64,000 nucleotides of DNA, taken from sequence record MZ475898.1; one strand, 5' to 3'. The stretch's first letter is position 1; every line of letters begins with the position of its first letter. Positions 26,824 through 55,181 of this stretch are shown here, one piece after another. Both the position numbers and the translations under genes were made by a program. Under the pieces are notes generated by a model, which saw only the letters and a list, made by a program, of their open reading frames with translations, made no database searches and had not been told where the DNA came from.

Positions 26824-26830
26824 TAACCTT

Positions 26831-28185: not shown

Positions 28186-28484
28186 TCTACGAATGGGTCC
28201 ACGACCTTGAAGGTAACGAAAGTCAGAATCTGCCTATCTTACCTCCAGACATTTATGCGTATGTGCGCGATGCCGTTACTGGCGCACGTACCCCAATCAA
28301 CTTTGAAGGCCGCACTGAGTTGCAGCGTCAAGACAAGAAAGTCATAGGCATTGTCTACTGGTCTAATCGAGCTAATCTGATTTCATGGACGGGCGTCGAG
28401 CGCTTTCGTTTTACGCTGTATGTAGTACGCGCCGCACGTAAGTCAAATGAGCAACATGAGGAAGCTCAAGTCTGCACTAATTAG
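28161..28484 (+). CDS. Hypothetical protein
   Basis: ORF between genes; start uncertain. Confidence 0.55.
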   Translation: MVQSMGDIIYEWVHDLEGNESQNLPILPPDIYAYVRDAVTGARTPINFEGRTELQRQDKKVIGIVYWSNRANLISWTGVERFRFTLYVVRAARKSNEQHEEAQVCTN

Positions 28485-28526
28485 GCTGAAATAGCTATCG
28501 CGCATAATACGCTCCTGTGCTATACT
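28484..28526 (+). promoter_or_regulatory. Early-type promoter (GGCTGAAA, 29 nt, TATACT with TG extension)
   Basis: 11-copy motif. Confidence 0.7.
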
Positions 28527-28571
28527 CATAGACGAAGCAACACATAATCTATTCACGCTAAGGAGCGTACT

Positions 28572-29003
28572 ATGACTATCAACAAGTTTGACTTTCAAAC
28601 ACTGACTACCCCAGAACAATGGTCTTCCGCTGCTTGGGGTTTCTATCGTGACTTCGCAGATCGTTTACGCGATGTTATCGGCCGCGATGATCTTTTCTTC
28701 GACATTGAAGTTGATGGTGGCAGCGATAGTGACCAAGTTGCCGAAGAGATGGTCGATGATGGTGTGATTCATTTACTTATCTCGTACAAAAACGAAGATG
28801 AAGATTTCATTAACGCCAAAGGCGTCTGGCTGTTCCAAGTCACTTACCCAACAGAAAGTGATATTGACGGTGAGTGGTCTAACCGCTTCGTGGTAGATGT
28901 GCAGACCGTTGATATGGAAATCTTAGAGCTGGTGGATTTTGATAACGGCCACCCACGTTTGCTTGAAGATATTGCAGCGCGGGTTAATCACTGGTTAGTG
29001 TAA
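28572..29003 (+). CDS. Hypothetical acidic protein
   Basis: AAGGAG RBS. Confidence 0.78.
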   Translation: MTINKFDFQTLTTPEQWSSAAWGFYRDFADRLRDVIGRDDLFFDIEVDGGSDSDQVAEEMVDDGVIHLLISYKNEDEDFINAKGVWLFQVTYPTESDIDGEWSNRFVVDVQTVDMEILELVDFDNGHPRLLEDIAARVNHWLV

Positions 29004-29068
29004 TTGCTTGCGGGTCTTTTACGAAGGGCCCGTCGTCAACAACACAAACCTGTTCTAAGGAGAACAAC

Positions 29069-29386
29069 ATGTCATCATTAGTTAAACTGCAATTCATCTT
29101 TCCAGAACTGACCTCAGTTACTGTAACTGTTTCTGATTCTGACATTCCTCGCTATCTCAATATTGCAGCGGGCGCCGAAGTAACATACGAAGGCCAGACG
29201 GCGCTGGAGCGTATTACTGACGTAAACCTGCTGCGCAATCTTCTCGTGATTGATCGTAAAATCCTAGAGATGTTGCTTGAGCGTCACAACAGCGCAAACG
29301 TTTCTAGTGAAATCGCTCACGCTGTAGACCAGATTAAGTTTGTACCTAATCGTGGCCTAAAGTTAATCGTCAATCGTTACCGCTGA
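29069..29386 (+). CDS. Hypothetical protein, tandem paralog A
   Basis: FIFPE motif shared with the next gene. Confidence 0.8.
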   Translation: MSSLVKLQFIFPELTSVTVTVSDSDIPRYLNIAAGAEVTYEGQTALERITDVNLLRNLLVIDRKILEMLLERHNSANVSSEIAHAVDQIKFVPNRGLKLIVNRYR

Positions 29387-29833
29387 GATTTGTGAAGGGC
29401 ATTTGCGAGTGCTCTTTGAAAATCCTAAACCCGTTCTATGGAGAACAACATGTCATCATCTACTGAATTTCATTTCATCTTTCCAGAGTCAACCACTCTT
29501 ATCGTTACTGTGGGTAACGGCATCGTCCCTGAGTATATGGGCATCCCTGCTAATCAAGAAACCCACCTGACTGGTGAGACTGCATTCAACTTTATGCAGA
29601 ACTCTAACATCGTGGGCGTTATGAATCGTTTTGATCAGTCGCTTCTCAATCTGCTTATTGATCGCCATGAGCAGAACGAAGAAGAGGAGAGTGCGTTGCG
29701 TCAAGCACACATGCAGAAGCACACAAAGAACTTCGGCGTGTATCTGCTGATCAAACATCACCGCTAAGATTTGTGAAGGGCATTCGTATGAGTGCTCTTT
29801 GAAAATCAACCCTGTTCTGAGGAGAACAATATG
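29381..29833 (+). repeat. Direct repeat of a ~70-nt intergenic module (29381-29452 and 29762-29833), period 381 nt
   Basis: CGCT(G/A)AGATTTGTGAAGGGCATT...GAGTGCTCTTTGAAAATC...GTTCT(AT/GA)GGAGAACAA(C/T)ATG. Confidence 0.85.
29450..29767 (+). CDS. Hypothetical protein, tandem paralog B
   Basis: Same length (105 aa) as paralog A; FIFPE and LL-x-RH motifs. Confidence 0.8.
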   Translation: MSSSTEFHFIFPESTTLIVTVGNGIVPEYMGIPANQETHLTGETAFNFMQNSNIVGVMNRFDQSLLNLLIDRHEQNEEEESALRQAHMQKHTKNFGVYLLIKHHR

Positions 29834-30241
29834 AAACATCCACAACCTGGCTCTGTATACACCCTGCGTGAAATGCTGACTGAACTGAGTCTGCGCGACA
29901 CGCCGAATCTTGGCTTCACTCCTGTTTCTGTGCGCTATCCCGAAACGAAGGAAATCGTCCAGCAGACGGTTCAGGATTCGCATCTGACCGAAGAAGAGAT
30001 GCTCGCTCTTCCTGGCTGGGCAGAAACGAAGTGGCGCTACATTCGTGAAACCCACGAGTGGATCCCTGTGTTCGTCGCTGTTGACGATGCAGAGGTTGAA
30101 GCGCTGTGTGTCATTGAACCCAACACTGACCGCTACTTCCGTAATGAGGGTATCATGCACGTTTACCCACGTGGCGTTGAGCGCGAGCAGCATAAAGCGT
30201 ATGACCCAGAAACGCACGGCACACTGGTTAAAGTGGCCTAA
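29831..30241 (+). CDS. Hypothetical protein
   Basis: GAGGAG RBS before MKHPQ. Confidence 0.75.
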   Translation: MKHPQPGSVYTLREMLTELSLRDTPNLGFTPVSVRYPETKEIVQQTVQDSHLTEEEMLALPGWAETKWRYIRETHEWIPVFVAVDDAEVEALCVIEPNTDRYFRNEGIMHVYPRGVEREQHKAYDPETHGTLVKVA

Positions 30242-30298
30242 GCACAAACTACCTCAAGCGGCTTACGGGCCGCTTTTCTTAAACATCAGGAGTCTATC

Positions 30299-30820
30299 AT
30301 GAAAACCACCGACGTAGTTCATATCGCTCATCACCTCATGACCCATCTCGCATCGGCTCGTCTCATCAGTGCATTGACTTTCATCGGCCAGGACGCTGTG
30401 CGTTTCAAAGTTGGTTCGCAGACGTTTGACGTTCGTGGGCGCCACCCGAGCTTCATCGTCCATCAAGTTGAAGGTGGATGTTTGTGTGCAGACGCAGACT
30501 CTGCCGAGATTGAAGCGCAGTTGAACGGTGACCCAATATCGAGTATGCGTGATCAACTGCCGCATCCTGAGAACGTGCAATCTGCCATCATCGATCACGT
30601 CAACTCCATGCCAGACAAAGACGTGCAGAACTTTAGCGAGCATCAGGGTGGCCCAGACATGGACACGATGTTTGAGCAGCGTCTGTGGTTGAAGAACTGG
30701 TTGATTAGTCGTTCAATCGTACTTGCCGACATGCTCGACATTGTTGCGTTTCTTGAAGGCACTGAGCGCCGTAACTCACTGGCTATGGCAATTGAACTCA
30801 ACAAAGGGAAACGCGCATGA
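30299..30820 (+). CDS. Hypothetical protein
   Basis: AGGAG RBS. Confidence 0.75.
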   Translation: MKTTDVVHIAHHLMTHLASARLISALTFIGQDAVRFKVGSQTFDVRGRHPSFIVHQVEGGCLCADADSAEIEAQLNGDPISSMRDQLPHPENVQSAIIDHVNSMPDKDVQNFSEHQGGPDMDTMFEQRLWLKNWLISRSIVLADMLDIVAFLEGTERRNSLAMAIELNKGKRA

Positions 30821-31317
30821 ACTTTGTACGCAGACTTAAAGCAATCGACCAGCTGCCGTTAATCACTGGTCAGTATTACAATGCGCAAGCCATGGCAGAA
30901 CAATCAGCATTTGGTTCGTGTGCGTTTCACATAACTGATCGTGTGGAGCTTGACGGCATCTCGATGTACATTCGTTTCCGCACTAATCAGCAACGTCTGT
31001 GGATGCATCCTGTTTTGATACTCGCATCAATCGACATTGAACATCAGGGCTGCGGTATCTTCACTGAACTTCTCGCAGAAGCCCAACGCGTATGTCGTGA
31101 GAACAAGTGGGTGCTGCAAATTGAGAACGTGCTTGAGCAACGCTTCCGCCGATTCTTGTTTGACCGTTCGTTCGAAACTATCGGCGTTGATAAAGATTGT
31201 GCGCACGGTAGCATGTTCTGGTTCTTTGATGAGAAGATCAAAGAGAACGCAACGCAGTTCCAAGCGATGGAAGAAAACATCCGAGAACGCGCCGCTGCAC
31301 AGAAGGCAACAACATGA
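30817..31317 (+). CDS. GNAT-like acetyltransferase
   Basis: LASIDIEHQGCGIFTELL motif A; QIENV. Confidence 0.6.
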   Translation: MNFVRRLKAIDQLPLITGQYYNAQAMAEQSAFGSCAFHITDRVELDGISMYIRFRTNQQRLWMHPVLILASIDIEHQGCGIFTELLAEAQRVCRENKWVLQIENVLEQRFRRFLFDRSFETIGVDKDCAHGSMFWFFDEKIKENATQFQAMEENIRERAAAQKATT

Positions 31318-31781
31318 ACATGCCATGGTACATGATGTTTGCTATCGGCTGTGTGCCGCTTTTCTTCTGCTATGTGACTATGCCGTGGTTTCGCGCTGCT
31401 GTCAAAAGACGTTTGCTGTTTAAACCACGTGATTACGATTCGGTGCAGGAGATCTTAGACACAGGCATCCCACCTGAGATCTCTATCGAATGCTTGCAGG
31501 CTAGCTATCGCAGCAACATGCCTGTCAAGTATGCACAACACATCGACTTCTATCCGCACAAGGAAGGCATCGTGTGTTGTCGCATGAAGTACGACGAGCA
31601 ATTTCCAATCGCTCGTATATTTAATGGTGTACTTGTCGCAAACATCGGACTGCTTGCTCTGCCTAGCAAAAAGATGCCGCGCATCACCATTAACTATTCC
31701 ACTTATCAAGTCACGGACTTTGATAGTGATAATGAGTACCTGCACATCTATCTTCAACATAAGGAAGGCAAGCATGAATAA
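31314..31781 (+). CDS. Hypothetical protein with N-terminal TM segment
   Basis: Hydrophobic N-terminus. Confidence 0.7.
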   Translation: MNMPWYMMFAIGCVPLFFCYVTMPWFRAAVKRRLLFKPRDYDSVQEILDTGIPPEISIECLQASYRSNMPVKYAQHIDFYPHKEGIVCCRMKYDEQFPIARIFNGVLVANIGLLALPSKKMPRITINYSTYQVTDFDSDNEYLHIYLQHKEGKHE

Positions 31782-32826
31782 CGAATCTGCAATGATCGAC
31801 GAAGACGTTCTTGAATGGCTCGAAGACCTGACCCGTCATAAGTTGCTGGACGTGATTGGCTTAATCAACAATCTGATTTTCGTCCATCGTCCTGTTCTCG
31901 ATCTGCCGACTCTCGGTTCGGACGAAGATGTAGCTGCACTGTCGCACGCTGACCTGACAACGTTGTTCCGTCTGGTTGCACCAGAATGCTCTGTTGATAC
32001 AAACACGCTGAGCAATCTACAACTGCTTGGGCTTATGCTCAATCAGAAAGGCGTTGTTGTGTTCTCGCTGCCAAACAACAACAGCCCGATTCTAACAGCC
32101 CGTACGTTCAACGTGCCTAATAAGCCGCAACGTTTAAACCCAGCCTCTTCTAAGGGTGAGATTGCTACTGCTGTTAGCGCGTGGTTATTCGGACTGTTCC
32201 CGCTTGAGCTACGCTCTGATCAAAACGACATGCCGCGTGAGAACGGTCTGTATCTTGCCAAAGACGAGCATGAGCAGATTCGTTTTGGGCGTTTGTTCCG
32301 TAACGGCGCAGAAGGTGATGGCTGGACTTTCTGCGAAAGCTATTCTGATGCTACAGCTACTTACTGGCATCACAGCGATTCACCTGTGGACGACGAACTG
32401 CCTATGAGTTTGCTGCATAGCTGGCTGCAAGTCTCCGCAACAACTTCACCAAACGAAGTGCATAACGAAAACGTCAGTGTGCTGGTAACTGACTCGCAGC
32501 GCATCTTTGCTTTCCTGCGCAGCCTGAGTCAACACGTTAAAGCTGAGCTGGTGGCCAACTTTGATGGTGTGCTTAACTCGACACATACCAGTGTTGAATC
32601 TATTGGGCGTCTGACGCGTGCTGACTGGACAGCCGCTGCCGTAGCAGTAGCAGATGATAAAGACATGAAGGACGGACTTGGCTCATGGGAAGAGCACAGC
32701 GCGTGGGATTGTTTCGTGGCTACGCTACAAAGTCTACGCTTCAATTTTGATACACGGGAATTCGACCCGATGTATGACTATGGGAAACACGACAATGAGA
32801 CCGATATTGATCGAGGAGACGAATAA
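31774..32826 (+). CDS. Hypothetical protein
   Basis: AAGGAAGG RBS before MNNES. Confidence 0.75.
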   Translation: MNNESAMIDEDVLEWLEDLTRHKLLDVIGLINNLIFVHRPVLDLPTLGSDEDVAALSHADLTTLFRLVAPECSVDTNTLSNLQLLGLMLNQKGVVVFSLPNNNSPILTARTFNVPNKPQRLNPASSKGEIATAVSAWLFGLFPLELRSDQNDMPRENGLYLAKDEHEQIRFGRLFRNGAEGDGWTFCESYSDATATYWHHSDSPVDDELPMSLLHSWLQVSATTSPNEVHNENVSVLVTDSQRIFAFLRSLSQHVKAELVANFDGVLNSTHTSVESIGRLTRADWTAAAVAVADDKDMKDGLGSWEEHSAWDCFVATLQSLRFNFDTREFDPMYDYGKHDNETDIDRGDE

Positions 32827-32833
32827 ACTAAGG

Positions 32834-33013
32834 ATGGCCTACGCACTGACTGCAATATTTCTATCTTGGCTTGAGCTGAGCATTGCAGTTCGGTATCTCG
32901 ACTATACACAGATTTTTGATGCGCTGATCATTCTGGTTAGCGGTGTGAATCTGGTGATTGCTTTTATCTCGTCACTTGATGAGGTAGACCATATCTTTTC
33001 GTGGGAAGATTAA
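32834..33013 (+). CDS. Small membrane protein
   Basis: Two hydrophobic segments. Confidence 0.55.
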   Translation: MAYALTAIFLSWLELSIAVRYLDYTQIFDALIILVSGVNLVIAFISSLDEVDHIFSWED

Positions 33014-33014
33014 A

Positions 33015-33221
33015 ATGAAAGACATTGTGCTACACACAGCCCTTTTATTGACCATGATCGTTGTTAGCTTTTTGACTCTCCACTACATTCGCTTCCTGAG
33101 TCTGGGCTACTATATGCTGATCACTATGACAGCATTCGTACTGGCAGTCTATGCGTGCAAGCGTCTCGCAACTGCTGTCACTAAAAATCGTTTTAACAAA
33201 GTGAGAATCAATCGTGGCTAA
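33015..33221 (+). CDS. Small membrane protein
   Basis: Two TM segments and basic tail. Confidence 0.65.
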   Translation: MKDIVLHTALLLTMIVVSFLTLHYIRFLSLGYYMLITMTAFVLAVYACKRLATAVTKNRFNKVRINRG

Positions 33222-33759
33222 ATCTTTCGGTGTGTACCTGACGTTCATTCTGCGCCATCGACCGCAAGACATTGGCCTTGCAATGGACACTCAGGGCTGG
33301 GTATCAGTTCCTGACTTGCTCGAACGTGCTCAATACAAGAAGCAACCAATCACGTTAGAGATGTTGCGCGAAGAAGTTGCTACTGACGGTAAAGGCCGCT
33401 TCCAGTTCAACGCTGCCCACTCGCGCATTCGTTGTGTGCAGGGACATTCAGTTGAGCATGTGATTCTTAACCTCAAGCCGTACACGAATCACAATGACCC
33501 GCTGTATCACGGAACGGCCAGCAAGAACGTTGCGTCTATTCTTGCGCAGGGAATTCTTCGCGGTAAACGTAAACACGTCCACATCGCAACCAACACCGCT
33601 ACTGCTAAGCAAGTTGGTCAGCGTCACGGTGAACCTGTTGTATTTGAGATCGACACGTATGCCATGATTACTCACGGCTACAAGTTCGAACAAGCCGAGA
33701 ACGGTGTGATTCTTATCGAGCACGTCCCATCCCGATATCTAAGGTTGGTAGAGTTATGA
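33214..33759 (+). CDS. kptA: RNA 2'-phosphotransferase (Tpt1/KptA)
   Basis: ILRH-P...D-QGWV, KGRF, RIRCVQGHS, LYHGT, RKHVH motifs. Confidence 0.92.
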   Translation: MAKSFGVYLTFILRHRPQDIGLAMDTQGWVSVPDLLERAQYKKQPITLEMLREEVATDGKGRFQFNAAHSRIRCVQGHSVEHVILNLKPYTNHNDPLYHGTASKNVASILAQGILRGKRKHVHIATNTATAKQVGQRHGEPVVFEIDTYAMITHGYKFEQAENGVILIEHVPSRYLRLVEL

Positions 33760-34163
33760 CTGAACAACGAATGAGTTATTGCGGTTCACGTTACATCCGT
33801 ACATCTTCCGGCAGGTGGTATTTGCTTTTCGAACGAGCGGCCTGCTTGTGCATCAATCGTCATGGTACCCAGTACTGGCGAGCAGGTACGCAAGTGTGGA
33901 AAGATGTGTCCATCTCAACTCGCGCCACTTTGGAAAACGAGTTTATCAGTCGTACCTGCAAAGATTTCAGGGAGTCGAAGTCTGCGTACAACAGATGGGG
34001 CAAGGTGATTCGTACACTCATTCTAGGTGCAGGTACTAACGAGCATCTCCACGATTTAGCGTCTATTCTTGAGTCACTGAGACAGACGCATATAGGGCGC
34101 AAGCAACAGCAACTGCGCACTACATTGGATGAAATAGCTATTCAGTCAAGAACCACCCTATGA
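33756..34163 (+). CDS. Hypothetical protein
   Basis: ATGA overlap. Confidence 0.6.
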   Translation: MTEQRMSYCGSRYIRTSSGRWYLLFERAACLCINRHGTQYWRAGTQVWKDVSISTRATLENEFISRTCKDFRESKSAYNRWGKVIRTLILGAGTNEHLHDLASILESLRQTHIGRKQQQLRTTLDEIAIQSRTTL

Positions 34164-34169
34164 TATAAT
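34127..34169 (+). promoter_or_regulatory. Early-type promoter (GGATGAAA, 29 nt, TATAAT with TG extension)
   Basis: 11-copy motif. Confidence 0.7.
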
Positions 34170-34220
34170 AGCAGCGAACGCTAAACAGTCTCGTTTAGCT
34201 ACTTACATGAGGATATGTAC

Positions 34221-34322
34221 ATGAATACCAACTACTGCCCGTTTCGCGCTGTGATGTACCACGCTTCAATCATCCTTCTCGCCATTTGCTCTGGCGTTGT
34301 TTTAGCCCATGCACATTTCTGA
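34221..34322 (+). CDS. Small hydrophobic peptide (33 aa, MNTNYCPFRAVMYHASIILLAICSGVVLAHAHF)
   Basis: GAGGA RBS directly downstream of a promoter; hand-translated. Confidence 0.45.
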   Translation: MNTNYCPFRAVMYHASIILLAICSGVVLAHAHF

Positions 34323-34333
34323 GGAGAAAGATT

Positions 34334-34570
34334 ATGTCAGATCCAAAACCAAAACCAGAAGTAACAAAAGCTGATCTCCAACATCTGCTGCACGTAGCAG
34401 GTGCGTATGAAGGCAACGACCGCCATCGCTGGTACGCAATGTTCGTCGTGCTCAAACTGAAACGTCAGATGGACGGTCAGAACCTGCCGCGCTCTTGTGC
34501 CAACATTACGCATGAGAGCCAAGACTACGAGATCGAAGAGGCTTGCTACAAGCTGGGGTATTTATCATGA
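34334..34570 (+). CDS. Hypothetical protein
   Basis: GAGGAG RBS before MSDPK. Confidence 0.7.
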   Translation: MSDPKPKPEVTKADLQHLLHVAGAYEGNDRHRWYAMFVVLKLKRQMDGQNLPRSCANITHESQDYEIEEACYKLGYLS

Positions 34571-34932
34571 AAGAGCGCCGTAACTATTACTGGGATAGCC
34601 CGTTCTATTACGGGCTGATACTCTGGCGTAAGCGTATGCGCAATGTCGTGCTGTTTCTGATTGCTATCTTAATCTATCATGGCACGCACGCACCCGTAGT
34701 TGAGAACATGTGGATGTGGACAGGCACTATCTTCGGCATTCTCTTTCTCGTCTGCTATATCAAGATGTGGGAATACGAGCGCATGATTCTCGAAGCTATG
34801 GGGCCGCTGAATAATAACTGCGTTATCGGTGCTCTTAACTTTGAGAGTCTTGAGCGCCGCCATGCTGTTTGGTATCGGAAGAAATTTAAATCCGAACCAC
34901 CTAAGACTAACACGTATTCGAGGGAAAACTAA
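34567..34932 (+). CDS. Membrane protein (2 TM)
   Basis: Hydrophobic segments; ATGA overlap. Confidence 0.65.
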   Translation: MKERRNYYWDSPFYYGLILWRKRMRNVVLFLIAILIYHGTHAPVVENMWMWTGTIFGILFLVCYIKMWEYERMILEAMGPLNNNCVIGALNFESLERRHAVWYRKKFKSEPPKTNTYSREN

Positions 34933-35294
34933 TGCCACGTATGTTCACACAGACTCATCGCAACAAATATAAACTGACCGAAGCTGATGCAGACTATCAC
35001 GGTGATGCCTGCGAAGCTGTCTATCTTGAAGGTATGGAGTTGCTCAAAGAGCTTCACTATCTGAAAGGGCTTCTGCATGATCGTCACATTGCAGAAAAGC
35101 CGATGCCCATTCCTCCTGAGTCTAAGCGTTGGTCAAAGTGGATGGCTTGCACGAAAATGTCACAGCTTGATGTGCGCTCCACTGACCGTCTGCGCAAGCG
35201 CTATCGTCGTGTCATGGAAGAACTCAAGATTGCCCGCGTATCTTATACGCTGCTGCACACGGCACGACATGCACCGGCGGTTGAGGTTAAGTAA
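34932..35294 (+). CDS. Hypothetical protein
   Basis: TAATG coupling. Confidence 0.7.
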   Translation: MPRMFTQTHRNKYKLTEADADYHGDACEAVYLEGMELLKELHYLKGLLHDRHIAEKPMPIPPESKRWSKWMACTKMSQLDVRSTDRLRKRYRRVMEELKIARVSYTLLHTARHAPAVEVK

Positions 35295-35575
35295 TGCAGT
35301 TTACTTCAAAAGAAGAAATAGACGAAACGTATGCAATGGTTGTTCATGCCATGCTGGCCGCCCTTGTGCCTGATGATACTCGCACAAAAGACCAACGCGT
35401 TCTCGACTACGTGGCGAAGCACTTAGCGCCCAATAACATTTTTGACAGGGACCTGTTTAGCATTTCATTTGAACATCGGTTCAAGTTTCAAACAACACAC
35501 AGGATGATGCGCAACGCTAAAGTGAGCGGCGCACCTTTTCTATATCTAAAGCAGGCTCATAGCCTAAAGAATTGA
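35294..35575 (+). CDS. Hypothetical protein
   Basis: TAATG coupling. Confidence 0.7.
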   Translation: MQFTSKEEIDETYAMVVHAMLAALVPDDTRTKDQRVLDYVAKHLAPNNIFDRDLFSISFEHRFKFQTTHRMMRNAKVSGAPFLYLKQAHSLKN

Positions 35576-35585
35576 GGTTAGTATC

Positions 35586-35849
35586 ATGGCAGTAGGTTTC
35601 GCCAAAGATGATGACGTGTCCAACACCGTCGAAACAAACGTGCTGAATGAAATCGACCGCGCTCGTTCTGAGTTGCGTGGCGCTGGTAGTTCGCACTGTA
35701 TCAACCCTGACTGTGGTGCAGAGATTCCCCTCATGCGCCGTGTAGCAATGCCGAACGCTCGCTACTGCGTTAGCTGTCAAGCACACCATGATGGTACGCC
35801 TACTGTTGGCTACAATCGTCGTGGTTCCAAAGATTCTCAACTGAGGTAG
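35586..35849 (+). CDS. ybiI: DksA/TraR C4 zinc-finger protein, YbiI-like
   Basis: CINPDCGAEIP-x-x-RR...CVSCQ; C-terminus GYNRRGSKDSQLR as recalled for enterobacterial YbiI. Confidence 0.85.
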   Translation: MAVGFAKDDDVSNTVETNVLNEIDRARSELRGAGSSHCINPDCGAEIPLMRRVAMPNARYCVSCQAHHDGTPTVGYNRRGSKDSQLR

Positions 35850-35854
35850 AAACT

Positions 35855-36163
35855 ATGTTAAGCAAACTTTTGGCTGCCTTAGGGATAACTTATCCGTCAG
35901 TCGATAGCGCCCTACTCAAGAATGCAAAGTGTGTGCGTATAGGTCAGGACGGCTACTGCATTCGCTCTGCTTCTGGTTTTGCAGAAGCACTTACCCATCA
36001 TATGGCCCGAGACTATGTTACTTTGGCTTCTGACACTGAGGCTAGAAAGAAGATTGTCGACCGAGCACAGTCTTTGACATACCCATGCGTTGTTTGGTTC
36101 ACTGGTCATGATTTTAATTCTATGTCTGTGGATGATCCAAACATGACCTACCCGGTACAATAG
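35855..36163 (+). CDS. Hypothetical protein
   Basis: GAGG RBS. Confidence 0.65.
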   Translation: MLSKLLAALGITYPSVDSALLKNAKCVRIGQDGYCIRSASGFAEALTHHMARDYVTLASDTEARKKIVDRAQSLTYPCVVWFTGHDFNSMSVDDPNMTYPVQ

Positions 36164-36182
36164 AAAACACGTGGAGAATAAA

Positions 36183-36323
36183 ATGTCCGAACCAGACAGA
36201 GAGAATGAAACACCTTGTGTGCGATGCACCAAGCCCACACCTGTTGTTGACTTGGGCGGCCCGTACGGTGATTTGTGTGATGACTGCGTAACGCTGATGC
36301 GTGAAGAACAGGAGGAAGAATGA
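36183..36323 (+). CDS. Small C2-C2 zinc-binding protein (46 aa)
   Basis: MSEPDRENETPCVRC...LCDDC; GGAG RBS; hand-translated. Confidence 0.55.
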   Translation: MSEPDRENETPCVRCTKPTPVVDLGGPYGDLCDDCVTLMREEQEEE

Positions 36324-36502
36324 AACTGTCCGAATCTGAATTAGAGTCTTTGCGTTTTCGTATGCGTCTGCGTGAGCAACCCAAGCCGATGCCTGACACG
36401 CACAAAATGCCAGACAAAAAGTTTGACAGTCATAAGCTGGACAAGTCCACTGATATGACGCTCGGCGATGTTCGCCACCACTTCCCTCCAAAAGGAAATT
36501 GA
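36320..36502 (+). CDS. Hypothetical protein
   Basis: AGGAGG RBS. Confidence 0.6.
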   Translation: MKLSESELESLRFRMRLREQPKPMPDTHKMPDKKFDSHKLDKSTDMTLGDVRHHFPPKGN

Positions 36503-36503
36503 A

Positions 36504-36836
36504 ATGGAAGAGATTCTTGATGTTGACAGCAAGATGTATGCTGTCTATGACGGTCACGTTGTTACCAACTATCATCATGAAGGTAGCGGCGTGATGTACA
36601 TCGAAGACAGCTTCTGGTTGAGTTTGAATCTGCGCGACGATCTTTTCCCTGCGCCGCCAACTCGTTTGGCGCATTACAAAAATGTACACACGCGTTCTAT
36701 TGATCGCGTTCGTGTTAGCACCATTCAAGATATACGCGAATCTTTGTATAAGGTTCGTCACTATATTCGTTGGTTCGAGTATATCTCCGAAGATAAGCTG
36801 CAAGGTTTGCAGCACCTGTTACGCGAACCTGATTAA
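36504..36836 (+). CDS. Hypothetical protein
   Basis: AAGGA RBS before MEEIL. Confidence 0.65.
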   Translation: MEEILDVDSKMYAVYDGHVVTNYHHEGSGVMYIEDSFWLSLNLRDDLFPAPPTRLAHYKNVHTRSIDRVRVSTIQDIRESLYKVRHYIRWFEYISEDKLQGLQHLLREPD

Positions 36837-36933
36837 AGGTAACGCTCATGTGTCTGCTAGTCAATTTCCTCAAGGACGAGGGTACGATGCGTATCTGTAA
36901 ACGTTTACAACAACCCAACTAAAGGTAGCGATC

Positions 36934-37299
36934 ATGATTTCTCGAATCAGTAATCTCCTCTTTGCCGAATCAATGTCCGTTGAGCAGTTAGCGCAGGCAT
37001 TGCGTATTCAAAACTTCAACGCGACTGTTCGTGGTGAGTTCAAGTTGGTTGCTGGCACTAACTCCAGTGGCTATATCACTTCTGCACTGTCAAGTCCTGT
37101 CGAAGTGCTGCGCGACCTGAAAGGCGTTCAGACTTTGAAAGATGCAGGCTTCTCTGACCCTGACATTGCACTCGCTCTCGGCATCGACCGTTTGCGTCTC
37201 AAGAAAGTTTATAACGAGGCACGCAAGAGCAACAAGAAGCCTGTTGCGCCTGCTCCAGTGCAGCGTACCTCTAAAGCAATTTCACTCGACGATCTGTAA
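36934..37299 (+). CDS. Hypothetical protein with HTH-like segment
   Basis: AGFSDPDIALALGIDRLRL. Confidence 0.6.
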   Translation: MISRISNLLFAESMSVEQLAQALRIQNFNATVRGEFKLVAGTNSSGYITSALSSPVEVLRDLKGVQTLKDAGFSDPDIALALGIDRLRLKKVYNEARKSNKKPVAPAPVQRTSKAISLDDL

Positions 37300-37309
37300 G
37301 GAAACAATC

Positions 37310-38014
37310 ATGACAAGTAAATTTGAAAAGTCGGATGCATCTACTCGCCGCGCCGAACTGCTGGTGCTGATGTGTGAGATCTATACGTCACTGCGTGACC
37401 AGTCGTTGTCTGAGTCAGAGACAAAAGCCTTTGCGTTGTTCAAAGACATTATGGATTTGGCTGACGTGCGTACAGTCGATGCCGTGTTCTCTGAAATCGA
37501 GCACGAGCTGGACCCTAAAGTTGAAGGTCTGCTGAATTATGTCCACAGAACGTTTATGCTGCATGACACTCTGTGCAAAGCTGAGGCAGAAGCCGCAGCA
37601 AAGCTCAAAGCCGAGGAAGCGCGTGAGCATGTACGCAAACACACGTACAAACCTCCTGTGGAAAAGCTCATTAGTAAAGAGCAGATTACCGAACTGTGTG
37701 CAGGCCTGACTGCATACGTTGGGCGCGAAGATGTTCGACCTAAAGTCAACGTCGATCTTATCGATGATATTCTCGAATCATTGGATAAGAACTACACGTT
37801 CATCGATACGCTCGATCTTTCCAGTCACCTTGAAGGTGAAGATCTGAAAACTGCCGTCAAGCTGATTGAAGACGCAGTGACCGAGAGTCACCAACCATTG
37901 AAAGAAGTCATGGACACTATCTGGTGCCACATGGCTAAACGCGATTTGCCTGCCGTTGACTTCTTTGACCAATACGGCAATGCCGAAGATGAGAACTATG
38001 CACTTGCACCTTAA
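37310..38014 (+). CDS. Hypothetical protein
   Basis: AAGGA RBS before MTSKF. Confidence 0.75.
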   Translation: MTSKFEKSDASTRRAELLVLMCEIYTSLRDQSLSESETKAFALFKDIMDLADVRTVDAVFSEIEHELDPKVEGLLNYVHRTFMLHDTLCKAEAEAAAKLKAEEAREHVRKHTYKPPVEKLISKEQITELCAGLTAYVGREDVRPKVNVDLIDDILESLDKNYTFIDTLDLSSHLEGEDLKTAVKLIEDAVTESHQPLKEVMDTIWCHMAKRDLPAVDFFDQYGNAEDENYALAP

Positions 38015-38195
38015 ACGTTATTGGCGGGCACTCATTGTATTGCTCGTCGTTTTCATCATTAGTTGTTTGCTGCCCATTCTTGAAGTGCGCAACCCAACAC
38101 TGACTCTTATCGTAGTCGTGATTGTTGCCTGCTACTTCATTGCAGTCTGGGCATACAAACCTGTTAAAGCAATTAAGGAAGAGTTGGATGACTAG
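37998..38195 (+). CDS. Small membrane protein (2 TM)
   Basis: Two strongly hydrophobic segments. Confidence 0.6.
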   Translation: MHLHLKRYWRALIVLLVVFIISCLLPILEVRNPTLTLIVVVIVACYFIAVWAYKPVKAIKEELDD

Positions 38196-38745
38196 TCGTA
38201 AGAACGAAGTCAAGTTGACTGACGCTGAGGTAGCCGCAGGCGCACGGCAGATACTTGAGATGCTGGTGAGTATGCGTCTCAGTGCGCATCATCAGGATGT
38301 CGGCTATGAAACGCTGTACACCGATTCTCTGGGTGAGACGCAGGGCGGTTGGTATGTAGCATTCGACAGCTTGAGCCGTGCTCGACTCAAAGAATCCAAA
38401 GCTGTGTCGTGGCGCAACGTCGGTATGGTCTCTGGTGATTCGCTAGAAGATGTTCTCACAACGCTGCGAACTCTCCGCCGAGATATGTCCAATCGCGTAC
38501 ATGCGCCCACACCAGAAGAGCGTGAGCGTGTACTCAACTTGCGTGATAGCAACATACGCAACGCACTGACTAAGTTCCACAAGGGTGAGTCGCTGTCTGA
38601 CGGTGAACTCAACCTGAGCATTAAGCATTTTCAGTCGTTAGAGAATGCGCTTCGCGTAGATGAGTTGTTGCAACTTGCAGCACCCTACATTACTCAGAAT
38701 CTCAACGTGCTCTTAGGATATAAAGAAGCACGCCGTCGCAAATAA
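38188..38745 (+). CDS. Hypothetical protein
   Basis: AAGGA RBS before MTSRK; terminator follows (about 38751-38783). Confidence 0.7.
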   Translation: MTSRKNEVKLTDAEVAAGARQILEMLVSMRLSAHHQDVGYETLYTDSLGETQGGWYVAFDSLSRARLKESKAVSWRNVGMVSGDSLEDVLTTLRTLRRDMSNRVHAPTPEERERVLNLRDSNIRNALTKFHKGESLSDGELNLSIKHFQSLENALRVDELLQLAAPYITQNLNVLLGYKEARRRK

Positions 38746-38801
38746 CAATCGGGAGATCCCTAACAAGGGGTTTCCCTTTTTGCATTTCTGGAGCAAATTT
38801 T

Positions 38802-39782
38802 ATGCGTTTTGGTTTCGCCTGCAAACTGCTTGATGACAACGGTAAGCAACCGTACACGAACAAGAGCCTGAGCTATGCTCACTTCTCCAAGCTGTCTCAG
38901 ACAGAGCAGCAAGAAAAGCTGGTGCTCGTCGTCACACACAATCTGACCTCGTTGCTTGAGATGATCAGACACGTTGGCCGTCTGCGCACCGACTTGCGTA
39001 TGTTTCGAATCACAAGCGAACTACTTCCGCTGTTCACGCACCCGATGGTAACGCGTATGTATCTCCAAACACACATGACCAAACTGACCGACACGATGTT
39101 GGCGACATGTGGTGCAGCGGCTAGACGTCTTGGTGTTCGACTGTCATTCCACCCAGGTCAGTTTACCGTGCTTGCGTCTGACCGACCTGACGTTATGCTC
39201 AACTCGATTAACGAAATGGAGTATCACGCCTACTGTGCGCAGGCTATGGGCTACGGTCGTAAGTTCCAAGATTTCAAAATCAACATTCACCTGAGCGGTC
39301 GTCGTGGTTCCGCAGGTTTCAGAGACGCCTACTCTCGTCTAAGCGATCATTGCCGCAAGATGATCACGGTAGAAAACGATGAGTACACTTCCTCGATCGA
39401 GGATTGTCTTGAGCTTGCCGACATTTGTCCTATCGTTCTCGACATTCACCATCACTGGGTAATGACTAACGAATACATTCAGCCAACCGATGATCGTGTT
39501 CAACGTGTCATTGACTCGTGGCGCGGCGTTCGTCCTGTTGCGCATTACTCTGTGTCTCGCCCAGAGTTCATACCATCTACAGGTCTGCCTGATCAGAACA
39601 AGATAGAAGCAAAGTCTGCCTCGCTGCGTGCTCATTCTGACTACTACCACAACGACAGCGTAAACGAGTGGGCCCTCAGCTTCGAGCAATTCGACCTGAT
39701 GTGCGAGTCTAAAGCGAAGAATCTAGCACGCACGAAACTAGCCCTTTTTAAGGGCAACTCTGCACAAATATGGTCAAAATAA
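38802..39782 (+). CDS. uvsE: UV damage endonuclease (UvdE/UvsE)
   Basis: RFGFAC, FRITSELLP, RLSFHPGQF, INIH, VENDE, DIHHH, HYS, AHSDY, MCESKAK motifs. Confidence 0.92.
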   Translation: MRFGFACKLLDDNGKQPYTNKSLSYAHFSKLSQTEQQEKLVLVVTHNLTSLLEMIRHVGRLRTDLRMFRITSELLPLFTHPMVTRMYLQTHMTKLTDTMLATCGAAARRLGVRLSFHPGQFTVLASDRPDVMLNSINEMEYHAYCAQAMGYGRKFQDFKINIHLSGRRGSAGFRDAYSRLSDHCRKMITVENDEYTSSIEDCLELADICPIVLDIHHHWVMTNEYIQPTDDRVQRVIDSWRGVRPVAHYSVSRPEFIPSTGLPDQNKIEAKSASLRAHSDYYHNDSVNEWALSFEQFDLMCESKAKNLARTKLALFKGNSAQIWSK

Positions 39783-39815
39783 GGCTTGTTTTAGAAGGTG
39801 CCCCTATGATACACT
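39772..39815 (+). promoter_or_regulatory. Early-type promoter (GGTCAAAA, 30 nt, TACACT with TG extension)
   Basis: 11-copy motif; ACGAGC/GCTCGT hairpin follows. Confidence 0.7.
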
Positions 39816-39866
39816 GATTACGAGCACTGTATGCTCGTTTCTACTGATTCAAGAGGATAAGACAAT

Positions 39867-40163
39867 ATGTTCATTACAACTCTAAACGCAAACACTGCGA
39901 AATCTGCACCGAAAGCAATTAACCACATGAACCTCGACCTTGCACCTTCTGGTCGCATTTCTTGTGTCTGGCCGGGCGCACTCGATGTTCCTGCGAACAT
40001 TAAACGTTTCTGCCGTGCTTGTGAAATCATTACCGACCTTGACCCATGTATGCGTCTTCGTTTCAAAGGTCGTCGCTCTGACGTTCTGGCGCTCATTACC
40101 AAGATCGCTCCTGACAACCCTGACCTCGCAGCGCGAATTGCGGGCACTATCACTGAGGCTTAA
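39867..40163 (+). CDS. Hypothetical protein
   Basis: GAGGA RBS. Confidence 0.7.
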   Translation: MFITTLNANTAKSAPKAINHMNLDLAPSGRISCVWPGALDVPANIKRFCRACEIITDLDPCMRLRFKGRRSDVLALITKIAPDNPDLAARIAGTITEA

Positions 40164-40164
40164 A

Positions 40165-40428
40165 ATGAAAATCCCCTGTTTGAATGCTGTGTATGGTATT
40201 ACGAACACCAATACTCCACTCGTGGATAAACGCGGCTTTCGTTGTGTTGAATCGAAATATGTTGACGGAACGGAGGTTAGATTACAACGACAAGCCCATG
40301 ACATTCATGAACGTGTGGTAGTGGCCTATGACCAGTATGGTCGTGCAGTGTATGGAACACTGACTCCGCCCGCATCGTTCGAAGTGCGTGACAGCAAGGA
40401 AAGCGACCAATATAACAAGGCGCCCTAG
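40165..40428 (+). CDS. Hypothetical protein
   Basis: GAGG RBS before MKIPC. Confidence 0.6.
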   Translation: MKIPCLNAVYGITNTNTPLVDKRGFRCVESKYVDGTEVRLQRQAHDIHERVVVAYDQYGRAVYGTLTPPASFEVRDSKESDQYNKAP

Positions 40429-40506
40429 CAAGCTCACAACGAAGCCATAGAATGAATACTAAGAAGTCTAACAATTCATGCGCTGACCTAATCGTGGGGT
40501 GTCAAA

Positions 40507-40884
40507 ATGATCGTAGTATGTAACTCTTCAAAGGAATTTTCTGTTGAACGTTTGAAACACGGGGACGCATTTGTATTCGGCAAGACGCGAATGCTTCTGC
40601 GAGCGGACTATCTGATACTAACAGATAAGCACAATGCTTTTTACGTGGTTCGCAAATCTGATGTTGTTTGGGCTCCCGAATTAACTGGCGCTACGCACAT
40701 GATTAAGATCAGGGCGTATGCCCAGATTAAGCCGTTCGAACTCCATGCAGCATGTCCACAATTCAATGGTCGTGTTTACGGAACAATCGCTTTCCGTAAC
40801 CCACACTTTGAACATAGAATGAATACACTTCGTTATAGTGAGACAATCTTTGGAGGTCAACATGGCACGGTATCATGTGTTTAG
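40507..40884 (+). CDS. Hypothetical protein
   Basis: ORF in operon. Confidence 0.6.
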   Translation: MIVVCNSSKEFSVERLKHGDAFVFGKTRMLLRADYLILTDKHNAFYVVRKSDVVWAPELTGATHMIKIRAYAQIKPFELHAACPQFNGRVYGTIAFRNPHFEHRMNTLRYSETIFGGQHGTVSCV

Positions 40885-45742: not shown

Positions 45743-46063
45743 ATGAGCAAAAAGAAACCGCAGTACATTCTGCCTCGTGAGCGTCCTACGCGCTTGCCAA
45801 ATCTGCGTGCTTATCTGATGCATCTGGCACGCAACCCAAACAAACATCGTGCCGTCCTTGAGATGCATTGCAATGCAGCGCTGGCCCAGCTGCGTAAAGA
45901 TCGTTTATTTCTTGGCAGACTGTTTGCTCATAAGGTGTATACGAAGTCGAACAAGGTCGCATACACAATAGTATGGATTGACCCGTACAACTACGATTGC
46001 CTTGTTCTAAATCATATAAAAAGGAGAGTAGAGTTTAAAAACCTTTACGGCCTGATTCTTTGA
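45743..46063 (+). CDS. Hypothetical basic protein
   Basis: ORF. Confidence 0.65.
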   Translation: MSKKKPQYILPRERPTRLPNLRAYLMHLARNPNKHRAVLEMHCNAALAQLRKDRLFLGRLFAHKVYTKSNKVAYTIVWIDPYNYDCLVLNHIKRRVEFKNLYGLIL

Positions 46064-52392: not shown

Positions 52393-52689
52393 ATGTCTGA
52401 ACAAGCTCAATTGCCTGGCCAAGTCGTTATCGTTTGTGTTATGCAGGAATCTGATTCTTTCATGGGCCAGAAGTTTGATGGCTATGTGTACTTGCTCAAC
52501 CTCGAACACAAAGCGATGTTTGAGCGTCACCTGCAGGCGCACAAGAGCCGTGAAAACTACTCACGCATTATCACCCACGCTAATCACTATATAACTAGCA
52601 CGGGCTTCGATGCGCTTCATGCTGCTATACGCAAAGACGCAAACAGACCCTGGCTGTGGTCAGATACTGACTACACGATAACTGCATAA
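52393..52689 (+). CDS. Hypothetical protein
   Basis: GAGG RBS. Confidence 0.7.
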   Translation: MSEQAQLPGQVVIVCVMQESDSFMGQKFDGYVYLLNLEHKAMFERHLQAHKSRENYSRIITHANHYITSTGFDALHAAIRKDANRPWLWSDTDYTITA

Positions 52690-53439: not shown

Positions 53440-53877
53440 ATGAAATTTGATCAAGCACCAACGAAAGCACAACTCGTACTGCTGGCCCTCGCGCTTGAAT
53501 CCGTTCTCCTCTCTATGGAGAAAACGTTTATCAACCGTAATCTGCTGGAGCAGTTACTTGCGAAGTACGGCATCTCGTTTAACGATCTGAAAGAGTTGCG
53601 AGAGTACGGCGAAAAGCATTCCGCCATCGGTACCAGCGTTGCTCAAGTTATGGAGATAGCTGCCTTGCATGTGGCTCATCTGAAAACAGAACCTGTGCCT
53701 GAATACAGTCAAGACGACCTTGATCTAATTCGCGTAGAATACGAGCCAATCGATACGTCTGTCCTGCGCCAGGGCGCTGTGAATGATGGGGTTATCACAG
53801 TGCAGCAAGCAGCCGCTTTTGAGCGCGATCAGATACTGACTGCTATTCTTGAGTACCGACTGCGCTCAGAAGCATAA
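53440..53877 (+). CDS. Hypothetical protein
   Basis: GAGG RBS before MKFDQ. Confidence 0.72.
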   Translation: MKFDQAPTKAQLVLLALALESVLLSMEKTFINRNLLEQLLAKYGISFNDLKELREYGEKHSAIGTSVAQVMEIAALHVAHLKTEPVPEYSQDDLDLIRVEYEPIDTSVLRQGAVNDGVITVQQAAAFERDQILTAILEYRLRSEA

Positions 53878-53881
53878 ATCT

Positions 53882-53924
53882 GGACAAAATCGTGGTTGTA
53901 GCAAAAACCGTCCTATGTTATAAT
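53882..53924 (+). promoter_or_regulatory. Early-type promoter (GGACAAAA, 29 nt, TATAAT with TG extension)
   Basis: 11-copy motif. Confidence 0.82.
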
Positions 53925-53981
53925 AGAGATGTAGCGTAGACGTGAGGTATGCGCTATAAATTGAATGACGCGTTTTTGCTT

Positions 53982-54115
53982 GACTGTAAGGTAGCGGTAT
54001 CTTACAGTCCTTTTTCAAGTGGCTTCGAAGTTTGAGGCTTCTTGCGAAAGGTCAAATGTACCTTTGAGCGTTTTCGGATTTACGCGGTTTTCACCGACTG
54101 CGCTCTCACTTTAAA
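53982..54115 (+). ncRNA. Structured leader RNA, copy 1 (P1 plus P2 with multibranch insertion)
   Basis: GACTGTAAG/CTTACAGTC stem, then TTTTCAAGTG...CACTTTAAA enclosing three hairpins. Confidence 0.55.
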
Positions 54116-54133
54116 CCGCAAAGGAAATACATC

Positions 54134-54955
54134 ATGCCAGAAGCACGCAAACCTCGCCCAGCTGATCGTTTCGCTAAAGCCCGTGCAGAGAAAAACTCAC
54201 CGGAGCGTCAAGATGCGGCAGCCCAGCGCACGTATAAAGACACTCCGCCTAAATCTGTTCAGGTGAAACTTGATGCTGTGGCAGCTTCTAAGAAGAAAGT
54301 TTCACGCGGCCCCAAGGCATCTCGTCCGCGTCAGTCGCCTGTTGTTGACGCAGCACCAAAGCCTCGCATTCGTGATGAGGAACGTGTGTACAATCTCGTA
54401 CACATGATTCTCTCTGCGTGGAAAGCCGATGCAGAAAACGCGGCGGTAAGTGTGGGAATCATTAAAGTGTCTCGCCGTAAGATCGAGGGTGCGTTACGCG
54501 ATCTCAAGAATACGCGCTTCACTAAAATCCCAGGCTTAATCAATGACGTGCTTGTCTACAATGAACTGGTAGCTGAGTTCGGACAGTGGGTGTACGTCGA
54601 GCACGACAGTCCTGATTGGATTTTTGTGCGCCTGCCTGAAAACAGCACGCCTGTGATTCGCGCTGACATTAGTTACGCCAAGACGGGTGAAACTTCCACG
54701 TCTGTTTCGACTTCTAGTGAAGTTCTGCTGAAAGATCTTAGCGAAGACGAAGAAGATGAGATCCCCGATAATGTCGAGTACGACGATGCGGACGAGACTG
54801 ACGAAGACGAAGCTGAGCCGTATGACTACAGCGCTTGGTCGCTGAGTGACCTGCAGGCTTATGCAAAGCGTTATGACTTCCTGCAGCCCGACACTGAGGG
54901 GTTCGATGATCGCGAGAAGTTGATAGCAGCCATCGAGCTGGGGGAACAGCACTAA
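54134..54955 (+). CDS. Dipolar protein: basic N-terminus, acidic C-terminus with a HeH-like module
   Basis: AAGGA RBS; DYSAWSLSDLQAYAKRY...DREKLIAAI. Confidence 0.8.
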   Translation: MPEARKPRPADRFAKARAEKNSPERQDAAAQRTYKDTPPKSVQVKLDAVAASKKKVSRGPKASRPRQSPVVDAAPKPRIRDEERVYNLVHMILSAWKADAENAAVSVGIIKVSRRKIEGALRDLKNTRFTKIPGLINDVLVYNELVAEFGQWVYVEHDSPDWIFVRLPENSTPVIRADISYAKTGETSTSVSTSSEVLLKDLSEDEEDEIPDNVEYDDADETDEDEAEPYDYSAWSLSDLQAYAKRYDFLQPDTEGFDDREKLIAAIELGEQH

Positions 54956-54965
54956 GCACAAATAT

Positions 54966-55009
54966 GGACAAAATAGTGGTAGTATCTAAAGCATGACCTG
55001 TGCTACACT
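54966..55009 (+). promoter_or_regulatory. Early-type promoter (GGACAAAA, 30 nt, TACACT with TG extension)
   Basis: 11-copy motif; no ORF before the next promoter. Confidence 0.75.
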
Positions 55010-55035
55010 ATAGATCGAATGCCTTGTAGTTTTTT

Positions 55036-55100
55036 GACTGTGAGTTACTTTCCGGCTCACAGTCCTTTTTAAAGTGCTCTCACAAGAACGCTTTAAAAAG
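55036..55100 (+). ncRNA. Structured RNA, copy 2 (P1 plus P2)
   Basis: GACTGTGAG/CTCACAGTC and CTTTTTAAAGTG/CGCTTTAAAAAG; compensatory change relative to copy 1. Confidence 0.55.
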
Positions 55101-55138
55101 CACAGACTGCCTGCGCTTTTGATAGACAGCATAAATCT

Positions 55139-55181
55139 GGACAAAATCATGGTTGTATCAGAATGCTGCCTGTCATACACT
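55139..55181 (+). promoter_or_regulatory. Early-type promoter (GGACAAAA, 29 nt, TACACT)
   Basis: 11-copy motif; CGAGCA/TGCTCG hairpin follows. Confidence 0.75.

Follow-up and report, generated by a model that had tools for sequence, protein, structure and literature searches.

Terminators located within the 5′ untranslated regions (UTRs) of phages, which yield either a short RNA or a long mRNA, have been mapped by ONT-cappable-seq in six Pseudomonas phages including the jumbo phage phiKZ (PMC10914365). The greA leader of E. coli is another case of a leader with a terminator (PMC2836576). Here, we describe a two-hairpin RNA module that occurs twice in a stretch of 64,000 nucleotides (64 kb) from sequence record MZ475898.1. 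We call this stretch the window, and use its coordinates unless the record is mentioned (window position = record position - 186000). The module consists of a hairpin (P1), a C and five U nucleotides (C+U5), and a second hairpin (P2) that captures the U-run as part of its 5′ arm. The first copy opens the leader of a gene for a 273-aa protein. Thus, both a ~200-nt leader and a reusable module of hairpin, U5 and U-capturing hairpin are defined.

The window is 100% identical to the Erwinia jumbo phage pEa_SNUABM_25 (MZ475898.1, 263 kb), in whose record all genes are labelled "hypothetical". Its relatives are jumbo phages of the genera Alexandravirus, Yoloswagvirus and Rivsvirus. The genome has one plus-strand block of genes (record position 185001 through the origin to 45957), which contains the module, and one minus-strand block. 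The two blocks meet at record positions 45975-46010 (L025) in a bidirectional-looking terminator composed of A5, a GC-rich stem and U5. In the PaBG-like group, which includes Alexandravirus, sigma-factor genes have been reported and a phage RNA polymerase has been reported to be lacking (PMC7412058), so the rules of the host polymerase and its terminators should apply. Although the group is reported to depend on host RNA polymerase, the timing of early expression in such jumbo phages is barely understood.

A duplicated two-hairpin module conserved by compensatory changes

A first-pass annotation of this DNA had claimed a duplicated, covarying RNA downstream of early promoters that belongs to no described family. 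The results below bear out a duplicated and covarying structured RNA that follows sigma-70-type promoters and fits no described family. The P1 pattern GACTGTRAG..CTYACAGTC has exactly two matches in 64 kb (53982-54009 and 55036-55064), where none is expected, and comparison of the two stems agrees with the annotated compensatory change, a double change from A-U to G-C. All features of the module are on the plus strand. P1 is a 12-bp hairpin in copy 1, where it matches the pattern exactly, and an 11-bp hairpin preceded by a U-rich linker in copy 2; in both copies it is followed by CCTTTTT. In copy 1, C+U5 (54010-54015) directly follows P1. The P2 of this copy forms locally at 54010-54050, as a hairpin with the U-run for its 5′ arm and CTTGCGAAAG for its 3′ arm. 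In copy 2, C+U5 (55065-55070) begins P2 (55065-55100), in which CTTTTTAAAGTG is paired with CGCTTTAAAAAG. A pattern for pairing between a U-run and a downstream A-run matches only 54009-54050 and 55064-55100, again against an expectation of zero. Copy 2 is flanked by two promoter-like sites and no gene is annotated there, which fits its earlier placement between two promoters without an open reading frame.

P1 and P2 together span 69 nt in copy 1 (53982-54050) and 65 nt in copy 2 (55036-55100), beginning ~51 and ~20 nt past the inferred transcription starts, respectively. The folds of these regions are more stable than those of shuffled sequences (z-scores of -3.7 for copy 1 and -4.2 for copy 2). 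For P1 alone, the corresponding values are -5.8 and -4.9, with folding energies of -15.8 and -15.7 kcal/mol. P2 has 15-20 bp in most instances, but only ~12+3 bp in copy 2, and is near-perfect, often with a single 1x1 mismatch located 5-7 bp from its base.

We collected leaders from 15 records and ten contigs that were found via homologues of the downstream protein, and aligned 23 distinct leaders in 175 columns. Standard pairs occupy 94.5% of the 1149 cells of the leader structure, as compared to 35-57% when partners are slid by 1-3 columns. There are 22 pairs that changed on both sides, and none of 500 shuffles reaches any of the five measures that we used. Compensatory changes occur in 11 of the 12 pairs of P1, implying that only the shape of this hairpin is under selection. 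Consistent with this, the sequence of P1 varies freely, and its loop ranges from 4 to >30 nt and can even be a three-way junction. Such changes also occur in P2 (3 of 15 pairs, with 96.5% of cells paired) and in two helices further downstream, namely the short form of P3 (two of three pairs, 90-100 and 91-99) and P4/P5 (6 of 13 pairs).

The G-U pairs in P2 and P4 function only in plus-strand RNA, which points to an RNA structure and not a DNA palindrome. A palindrome recognized by a protein was separately considered for P2 and rejected, because its arms retain G-U pairs, whose counterparts on the opposite strand would be C-A, and because the distance between the arms varies. As to a terminator on the minus strand, neither hairpin is followed by a U-run on that strand. 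The helices therefore exist as plus-strand RNA structures conserved by compensation.

The earlier description of P2 needs partial revision. The P2 drawn for copy 2 is correct, but in copy 1 the true P2 is the local hairpin with the pairing and compensatory changes given above, as both its predicted fold and the alignment of relatives indicate. The long-range P2 previously drawn for copy 1 (54012-54021 with 54107-54115) is rejected: it is paired in 70% of cells in the 23 relatives, exhibits no covariation and is equaled by 411 of 500 shuffles. Similarly, what had been taken as three hairpins inserted into the P2 of copy 1 are really the top of P2, the P3 hairpin (54047-54065) and P4/P5 (54066-54105).

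To study recurrence, we built a covariance model of P1 and P2 from the 23 leaders, leaving out copy 2. The model scores copy 2 (55032-55102) at 50.6 bits (E-value 8e-10), three paralogues in Yoloswag at 50.8, 37.3 and 31.2 bits, and a site in phB78 at 23.5 bits. On the plus strand of the rest of the 263-kb genome, it finds just two sub-threshold matches to part of the P2 arms (16.5 and 13.8 bits; E-values 0.2 and 0.95). P1 with a U-capturing P2 directly behind it appears in the minimum free energy (MFE) folds at 13 of 14 sites from the window, Yoloswag, SNUABM_5, phB78/SNUABM_30 and Alexandra. The fourteenth site, in Yoloswag, has P2 alone, directly after a promoter and without a clear P1. At nine of ten sites, copy 1 among them, pairing of the U-run beats that in all 300 shuffles of the downstream sequence; the tenth fails for a technical reason, as the hairpin there starts one base later. 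A genome-wide pattern scanner passes 71 of 468 sites at loose thresholds, and only the two copies stand out when these are tightened.

The non-coding region 54004-54132 is conserved at 72-89% in about 45 phage records by distant BLAST, and BLAST matches to copy 2 are confined to the nine closest relatives. Structural counterparts of copy 2 exist in Yoloswag and SNUABM_5; they occupy the matching position, with a promoter on one side and, on the other, that of a gene for a 535-aa protein. Pattern scans of IMG/VR found the leader in 13 contigs only (~260-268 kb, from the same phage group), along with one chance match to the P2 pattern. Searches with Rfam 15 at gathering thresholds gave no match in the 64 kb, and searches at E-value thresholds with the module region and three relatives gave only chance-level matches, all of them elsewhere. 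The module and leader are thus an undescribed RNA family, supported by covariation and restricted to this group of jumbo phages.

Modules also occur at gene ends and between cistrons. In Alexandraviruses, a conserved ~145-nt intercistronic RNA follows a gene for a 63-aa protein (L009:1850-1998; homologous in L003, L005-L008, L010, L011 and L013-L015). In this RNA, a P1 in the form of a three-way junction precedes CCTTTTT; a hairpin that takes up part of the U-run comes next, followed by a hairpin with the Shine-Dalgarno sequence as its GAGG loop. The RNA has no promoter box, and no promoter is close by.

The leader opened by copy 1 has five helices and a candidate pseudoknot, and reaches the start codon at 54134. 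Its elements are, in order, the promoter, a 5′-terminal hairpin (53931-53957, predicted by MFE folding of the nascent RNA, both for the window and for its relatives), a single-stranded A/U-rich linker (53958-53981), P1, C+U5, P2, P3, P4/P5, an invariant tail, the Shine-Dalgarno sequence and the ATG codon, all on the plus strand. The 5′ arm of P3 overlaps the 3′ end of P2, such that the two helices share 54047-54050 and could pair alternatively. P3 reads GGGTTCGATACCC, a look-alike of a tRNA T-arm, in the majority of the 23 leaders, and small variants occur in six. In the lineage of the window, the loop of P3 has diverged, but the stem is kept through a compensatory change from G-C to U-A. P4/P5 is a long hairpin whose loop holds an invariant 12-nt core, TTTACGCGGTTT. 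The end of the leader (54113-54136) comprises the tail AAACCGC (54113-54119), the Shine-Dalgarno sequence AAAGGAAA (54120-54127) and the ATG.

The tail is complementary to the loop sequence GCGGTTT (54084-54090). All seven pairs of this candidate pseudoknot can form in 23 of 23 sequences and are invariant except for one G-U. Given that these pairs never vary, the pseudoknot is possible, but unproven. Some MFE folds pair CCTTTG, which lies on the 3′ side of P3, with the CAAAGG located at the Shine-Dalgarno sequence, and the MFE folds of orthologues switch between a state with P2 and Shine-Dalgarno pairing and a state with P3. Every change in the CCCTTT segment is from C to U, which still pairs with G in both possible partners.

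Two further observations concern the leader in relatives. An annotated 65-aa coding sequence in Yoloswag, gp311 (L012:2412-2609), overlies the structured leader and is probably spurious, since differences in loop length among leaders are not multiples of three and changes follow RNA pairing. In phB78 and pEa_SNUABM_30 (L015/L016, 2343-2705), the 273-aa gene and P4/P5 are absent, and P1, P2 and P3 are directly followed by a second promoter with the box described below and the 535-aa gene.

Predicted termination or pausing in the leader, and its alternatives

Our prediction is that host RNA polymerase reads each copy of the module as a leaky, Rho-independent terminator or as a pause signal within a leader, and we give this function about an even chance of being correct. 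The prediction rests on the observation that the features that define a terminator are held constant, whereas the sequence, loop size and topology of the hairpin are free. A terminator scan flags both module sites as terminator-like, in copy 1 with an intrinsic-terminator or pause signal at C+U5. In both copies, the U tract starts one nucleotide (the C) past the P1 stem. U5 is shorter than the canonical 7-9 nt, and the convergent terminator of the phage likewise ends in U5. The T columns of U5 are invariant in the 23 leaders, save a one-base gap in AD1. In 6 of the 23 leaders, the partners of U5 at columns 84 and 85 became a mismatch and a G-U pair, yet U5 is still kept. This pattern suggests that U5 is constrained for its own sake, beyond its pairing in P2.

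From the inferred transcription start to U5, the nascent RNA folds into the 5′ hairpin, the single-stranded linker and P1, and no competing fold appears in any of ten sequences; these folds also contain no upstream antiterminator that competes with P1. RNA polymerase does not reach the 3′ arm of P2 until 25-35 nt past the U-run. It follows that P2 exists only in read-through RNA and cannot affect the termination decision at U5. The first-pass annotation had proposed the contrary, that P2 sequesters the U-tract and thereby prevents termination at P1, and this is contradicted by the order of transcription and by the lack of a competitor for P1 in the nascent RNA. In both copies, the promoter is located between the stop codon of the preceding gene and P1, so that P1 and U5 would meet polymerases from the upstream unit as well as those from the nearby promoter.

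Under the predicted mechanism, a fraction of polymerases would stop at U5, including some arriving from the upstream unit, and would release short RNAs of ~85 nt (copy 1) or ~55 nt (copy 2). The remaining polymerases would read through, and P2 would form only afterwards. It is more likely that P2 then marks or protects the read-through mRNA. For example, it could make the single-stranded A/U-rich run inaccessible to RNase E, Hfq or Rho. It might instead serve as a processing stem of 15-20 bp in that mRNA. In copy 1, P2 and P3 would compete for the A-run, which may set whether CCTTTG masks the Shine-Dalgarno sequence of the 273-aa gene. Given the shared nucleotides 54047-54050, the possible pairing of CCTTTG with the Shine-Dalgarno sequence and the flipping folds, the read-through RNA may also be gated at translation.

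Several considerations weigh against a leader terminator. The 3′ ends at U5 are predictions, and the start sites are deduced from promoter consensus. A U5 tract with a 1-nt spacer and a stem base containing A and U is a modest terminator for E. coli and may only pause the polymerase. Moreover, stopping 20-50 nt past a strong promoter appears wasteful. The Yoloswag site with P2 only suggests that P2 may work alone, while the other 11 compact terminator-like sites of the genome lack P2, which is therefore not a general accessory of terminators. The role that we propose for P2 is conjectural.

The module could instead be an element for RNA processing or stability that involves no termination, in which P2, perhaps stacked on P1, is a double-stranded target of RNase III or a phage factor. 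Early leaders would be trimmed at such an element, much as happens in the early mRNAs of T7 or in the N leader of lambda. We regard this as rather unlikely, although P2 is a near-perfect helix of 15-20 bp, occurs without P1 at one Yoloswag site and sits behind tandem strong promoters, as T7 R0.3 does. However, an RNase III site comprises about two turns of double-stranded RNA, and with only ~12+3 bp the P2 of copy 2 is short for the E. coli enzyme. Moreover, a requirement for double-stranded RNA does not by itself explain the conservation of U5 despite lost partners. To a similarly limited degree, copy 1 might chiefly be a leader for translational control, autoregulatory or sensing a factor, in which P1 and P2 are mere parts of the fold. 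Its off state would pair the U-run with the A-run and CCTTTG with the Shine-Dalgarno sequence, and its on state would pair the A-run with CCTTTG as P3. The overlap of P2 and P3 at 54047-54050, orthologue folds that flip between the states, changes in CCCTTT that all retain pairing with G, and the invariant loop and tail beside the Shine-Dalgarno sequence are in agreement with this idea. On the other hand, copy 2 and other paralogues have P1 and P2 without P3, a Shine-Dalgarno sequence or a gene, and neither the Shine-Dalgarno pairing nor the pseudoknot exhibits covariation. A somewhat less probable suggestion, which is compatible with a leaky terminator, is that the short terminated RNAs are themselves the product and act as Hfq-type small RNAs. 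The predicted 55-nt and 85-nt RNAs would have the matching architecture, in which a 5′ hairpin or seed and a U-rich stretch precede a terminator hairpin with its U-tail, and the linker before P1 of copy 2 (GAATGCCTTGTAG) is nearly identical to that of Alexandra-type leaders. In addition, short RNAs derived from 5′ UTRs are abundant in phiKZ (PMC10914365). However, copy 1 of the window and several relatives do not conserve this linker, and P2 and the conserved 3′ half of the leader would be left unexplained.

The first-pass annotation had emphasized an analogy to the put RNAs of phage HK022, and listed a leader terminator and a short RNA product as alternatives; these alternatives fit the data better. 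In a put-like element, the folded P1 and P2 would stay on host RNA polymerase as a cis-acting antiterminator that makes it resistant to downstream terminators; put RNA itself suppresses such terminators via the beta′ zinc-binding domain. The module does have two abutting stems of ~70 nt that lie 20-50 nt past strong promoters heading long strings of genes, and it has two neighboring occurrences, as do putL and putR. However, our model finds no match at E-values up to 10 in positions 22000-40751 of HK022, the stretch taken to hold putL and putR, which the record does not annotate. Although the layout resembles that of putL (PMC9378689), P1 is an uninterrupted helix with freely variable pairs and loop and no conserved stem residues or bulges, whereas a put RNA needs particular residues and bulges and a triple helix in stem I for its activity (PMC9378689). 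The module itself carries a terminator-like U5, and its instances at gene ends and between cistrons are also unexpected for a put-like element. Moreover, there is no strong plus-strand intrinsic terminator past copy 2 in the rest of the plus-strand block, which leaves little for such an element to suppress. Overall, a put-like function is very improbable. Even less credible is a nut-like site at which an antiterminator protein of the phage loads, for which the N-terminus of the 273-aa protein would be a candidate. The two module copies, one of which belongs to the leader of the first gene, would then correspond to nutL and nutR, and the N-terminus in question is basic and helical. However, the protein has no match among antiterminator families, N and Q included, the loop of P1 is not conserved and there is no clear boxA. 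Taken broadly, it is very doubtful that the module and upstream linker are a cis-acting RNA that reprograms host RNA polymerase, put-like on its own or nut-like with the N-terminus of the 273-aa protein, with U5 as a loading pause. If true, jumbo phages would thereby have their first RNA-based device for processive antitermination. Finally, a 95-nt tRNA-Glu(ttc) is annotated over P1, P2 and P3 in pEa_SNUABM_13 (L001:3178-3272), where ARAGORN makes this call, and P3 of most relatives is a good look-alike of a T-arm, which most likely explains the call. Nonetheless, ARAGORN finds no tRNA in the window or in 14 of 15 relatives, Rfam finds none at the leader, and the call has to recast P1 and P2 as D and anticodon arms, whereas covariation favors the five-helix leader. 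A tRNA or tRNA-like gene is thus refuted for the window, with a negligible chance left to it, and the annotation in pEa_SNUABM_13 is very likely a false call.

If the U-capturing hairpin of a leaky terminator does mark read-through RNA for protection, processing or translational gating, it would represent a principle of terminator design that was not described before. The module also provides a clean test system for the fate of RNA that escapes a terminator.

Promoters and neighboring genes

The promoter of copy 1 (53880-53924, plus strand) has a GGACAAAAT box at 53882-53890, a -35-like TTGTAG at 53896-53901, a 17-nt spacer and a TG-extended -10 element, TATAAT, at 53919-53924. By promoter consensus, transcription of the leader would start near 53931. 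The arrangement of box and -10 element is kept in all relatives. The promoter of copy 2 (54964-55009, plus strand) has the GGACAAAAT box at 54966-54974 and a TG-extended -10 element, TACACT, at 55004-55009, which would place the start near 55016. A third promoter (55137-55181, plus strand), with a box at 55139-55147, a -35-like TTGTAT at 55153-55158 and the -10 element TACACT at 55176-55181, lies ahead of the 535-aa gene (55243) and of the closely spaced genes behind it.

A GGWCAAAAT box located ~28 nt upstream of a TG-extended -10 element occurs seven times in the whole 263-kb genome. All seven are on the plus strand and within the window (23796, 39772, 43189, 52694, 53882, 54966 and 55139), and four fall within 2.5 kb around the module, making this the densest cluster of early-type promoters in the genome. 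The box covers roughly -49 to -41, and could be an UP-like element or a site for an activator. Start-proximal hairpins resembling that at 53931-53957 also follow five of the six other box promoters. We noticed short repeats in these regions. One, CCGACTGCGCTC, occurs at 53857-53868, before the promoter at 53882, and at 54094-54105, as the 3′ arm of P4. Another, TCAGATACTGACT, occurs at 52660-52672 and 53828-53840, in each case close to the 3′ end of a gene that precedes a box promoter. These repeats suggest a mosaic duplication of regulatory cassettes.

The gene headed by the copy 1 leader (54134-54955, plus strand) encodes a 273-aa protein with a basic N-terminus, a conserved core of ~100 aa, an acidic stretch and a variable C-terminal module resembling helix-extension-helix. 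It has 57 unnamed homologues. Pfam gives only a sub-threshold Ish1/HeH match, and PHROGs gives none. A search of the PDB by Foldseek with an AlphaFold model (predicted local distance difference test, pLDDT, of 70) found no significant match, with weak winged-helix-like ones at E-values above 0.5.

The Shine-Dalgarno sequence GAGG is, in several places, displayed as the tetraloop of an A/U-rich hairpin of 5-6 bp, with the ATG 3-7 nt past the stem. There are eight such hairpins on the plus strand (window positions 23872, 29819, 34321, 41964, 52777, 55229, 56913 and 60318) and one on the minus strand. The hairpin also precedes homologous genes in relatives.

Comparison with known systems

The closest known arrangements are terminators in phage 5′ UTRs, such as T102 of phiKZ (PMC10914365), and GraL in the greA leader (PMC2836576). 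They resemble the module in having a hairpin and U-run only tens of nucleotides past a promoter, from which either a short RNA or a long mRNA would be expected as output. By contrast, the U-run of our module doubles as the 5′ arm of a second conserved hairpin, the module is duplicated, and copy 1 lies within a five-helix leader that is conserved in Alexandravirus, Yoloswagvirus and Rivsvirus. Unlike T102 and GraL, the terminator in our module is a prediction from sequence.

The putL and putR elements of HK022 are also ~70 nt, are composed of two adjacent stem-loops, follow early promoters closely and are present in two copies. However, the module does not match them in sequence or structure, the sequences of its helices are free, there is no evidence of a triple helix, and a U-run separates its stems. 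Like a tRNA T-arm, P3 has a 5-bp stem and a TTCGATA loop in most relatives, but the leader has no cloverleaf, and the lineage of the window replaced the P3 loop while keeping its stem.

In retroregulation by lambda sib/tI, as predicted here, a structure is present only in RNA that extends past a terminator. The extra pairing in sib lengthens the stem of the terminator, whereas the U-run of the module forms a separate hairpin downstream. Likewise, the RNase III sites in the early mRNAs of T7 and in the N leader of lambda belong to structured leaders behind strong early promoters, although cleavage of the module is hypothetical. Attenuators of the trp type and the zipper-type attenuator of pLS20 (PMC13401043) share a leader terminator before the first gene and overlapping helices, which in our case are P2 and P3. 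In contrast to these attenuators, no antiterminator competes with P1, and the alternative pairing is located downstream of the predicted terminator. This location implies that the fate or translation of the RNA would be affected, and not the termination decision. A structured phage leader with a premature terminator is of a known kind, while the U-capturing hairpin and the multi-helix leader vary it in a new way.

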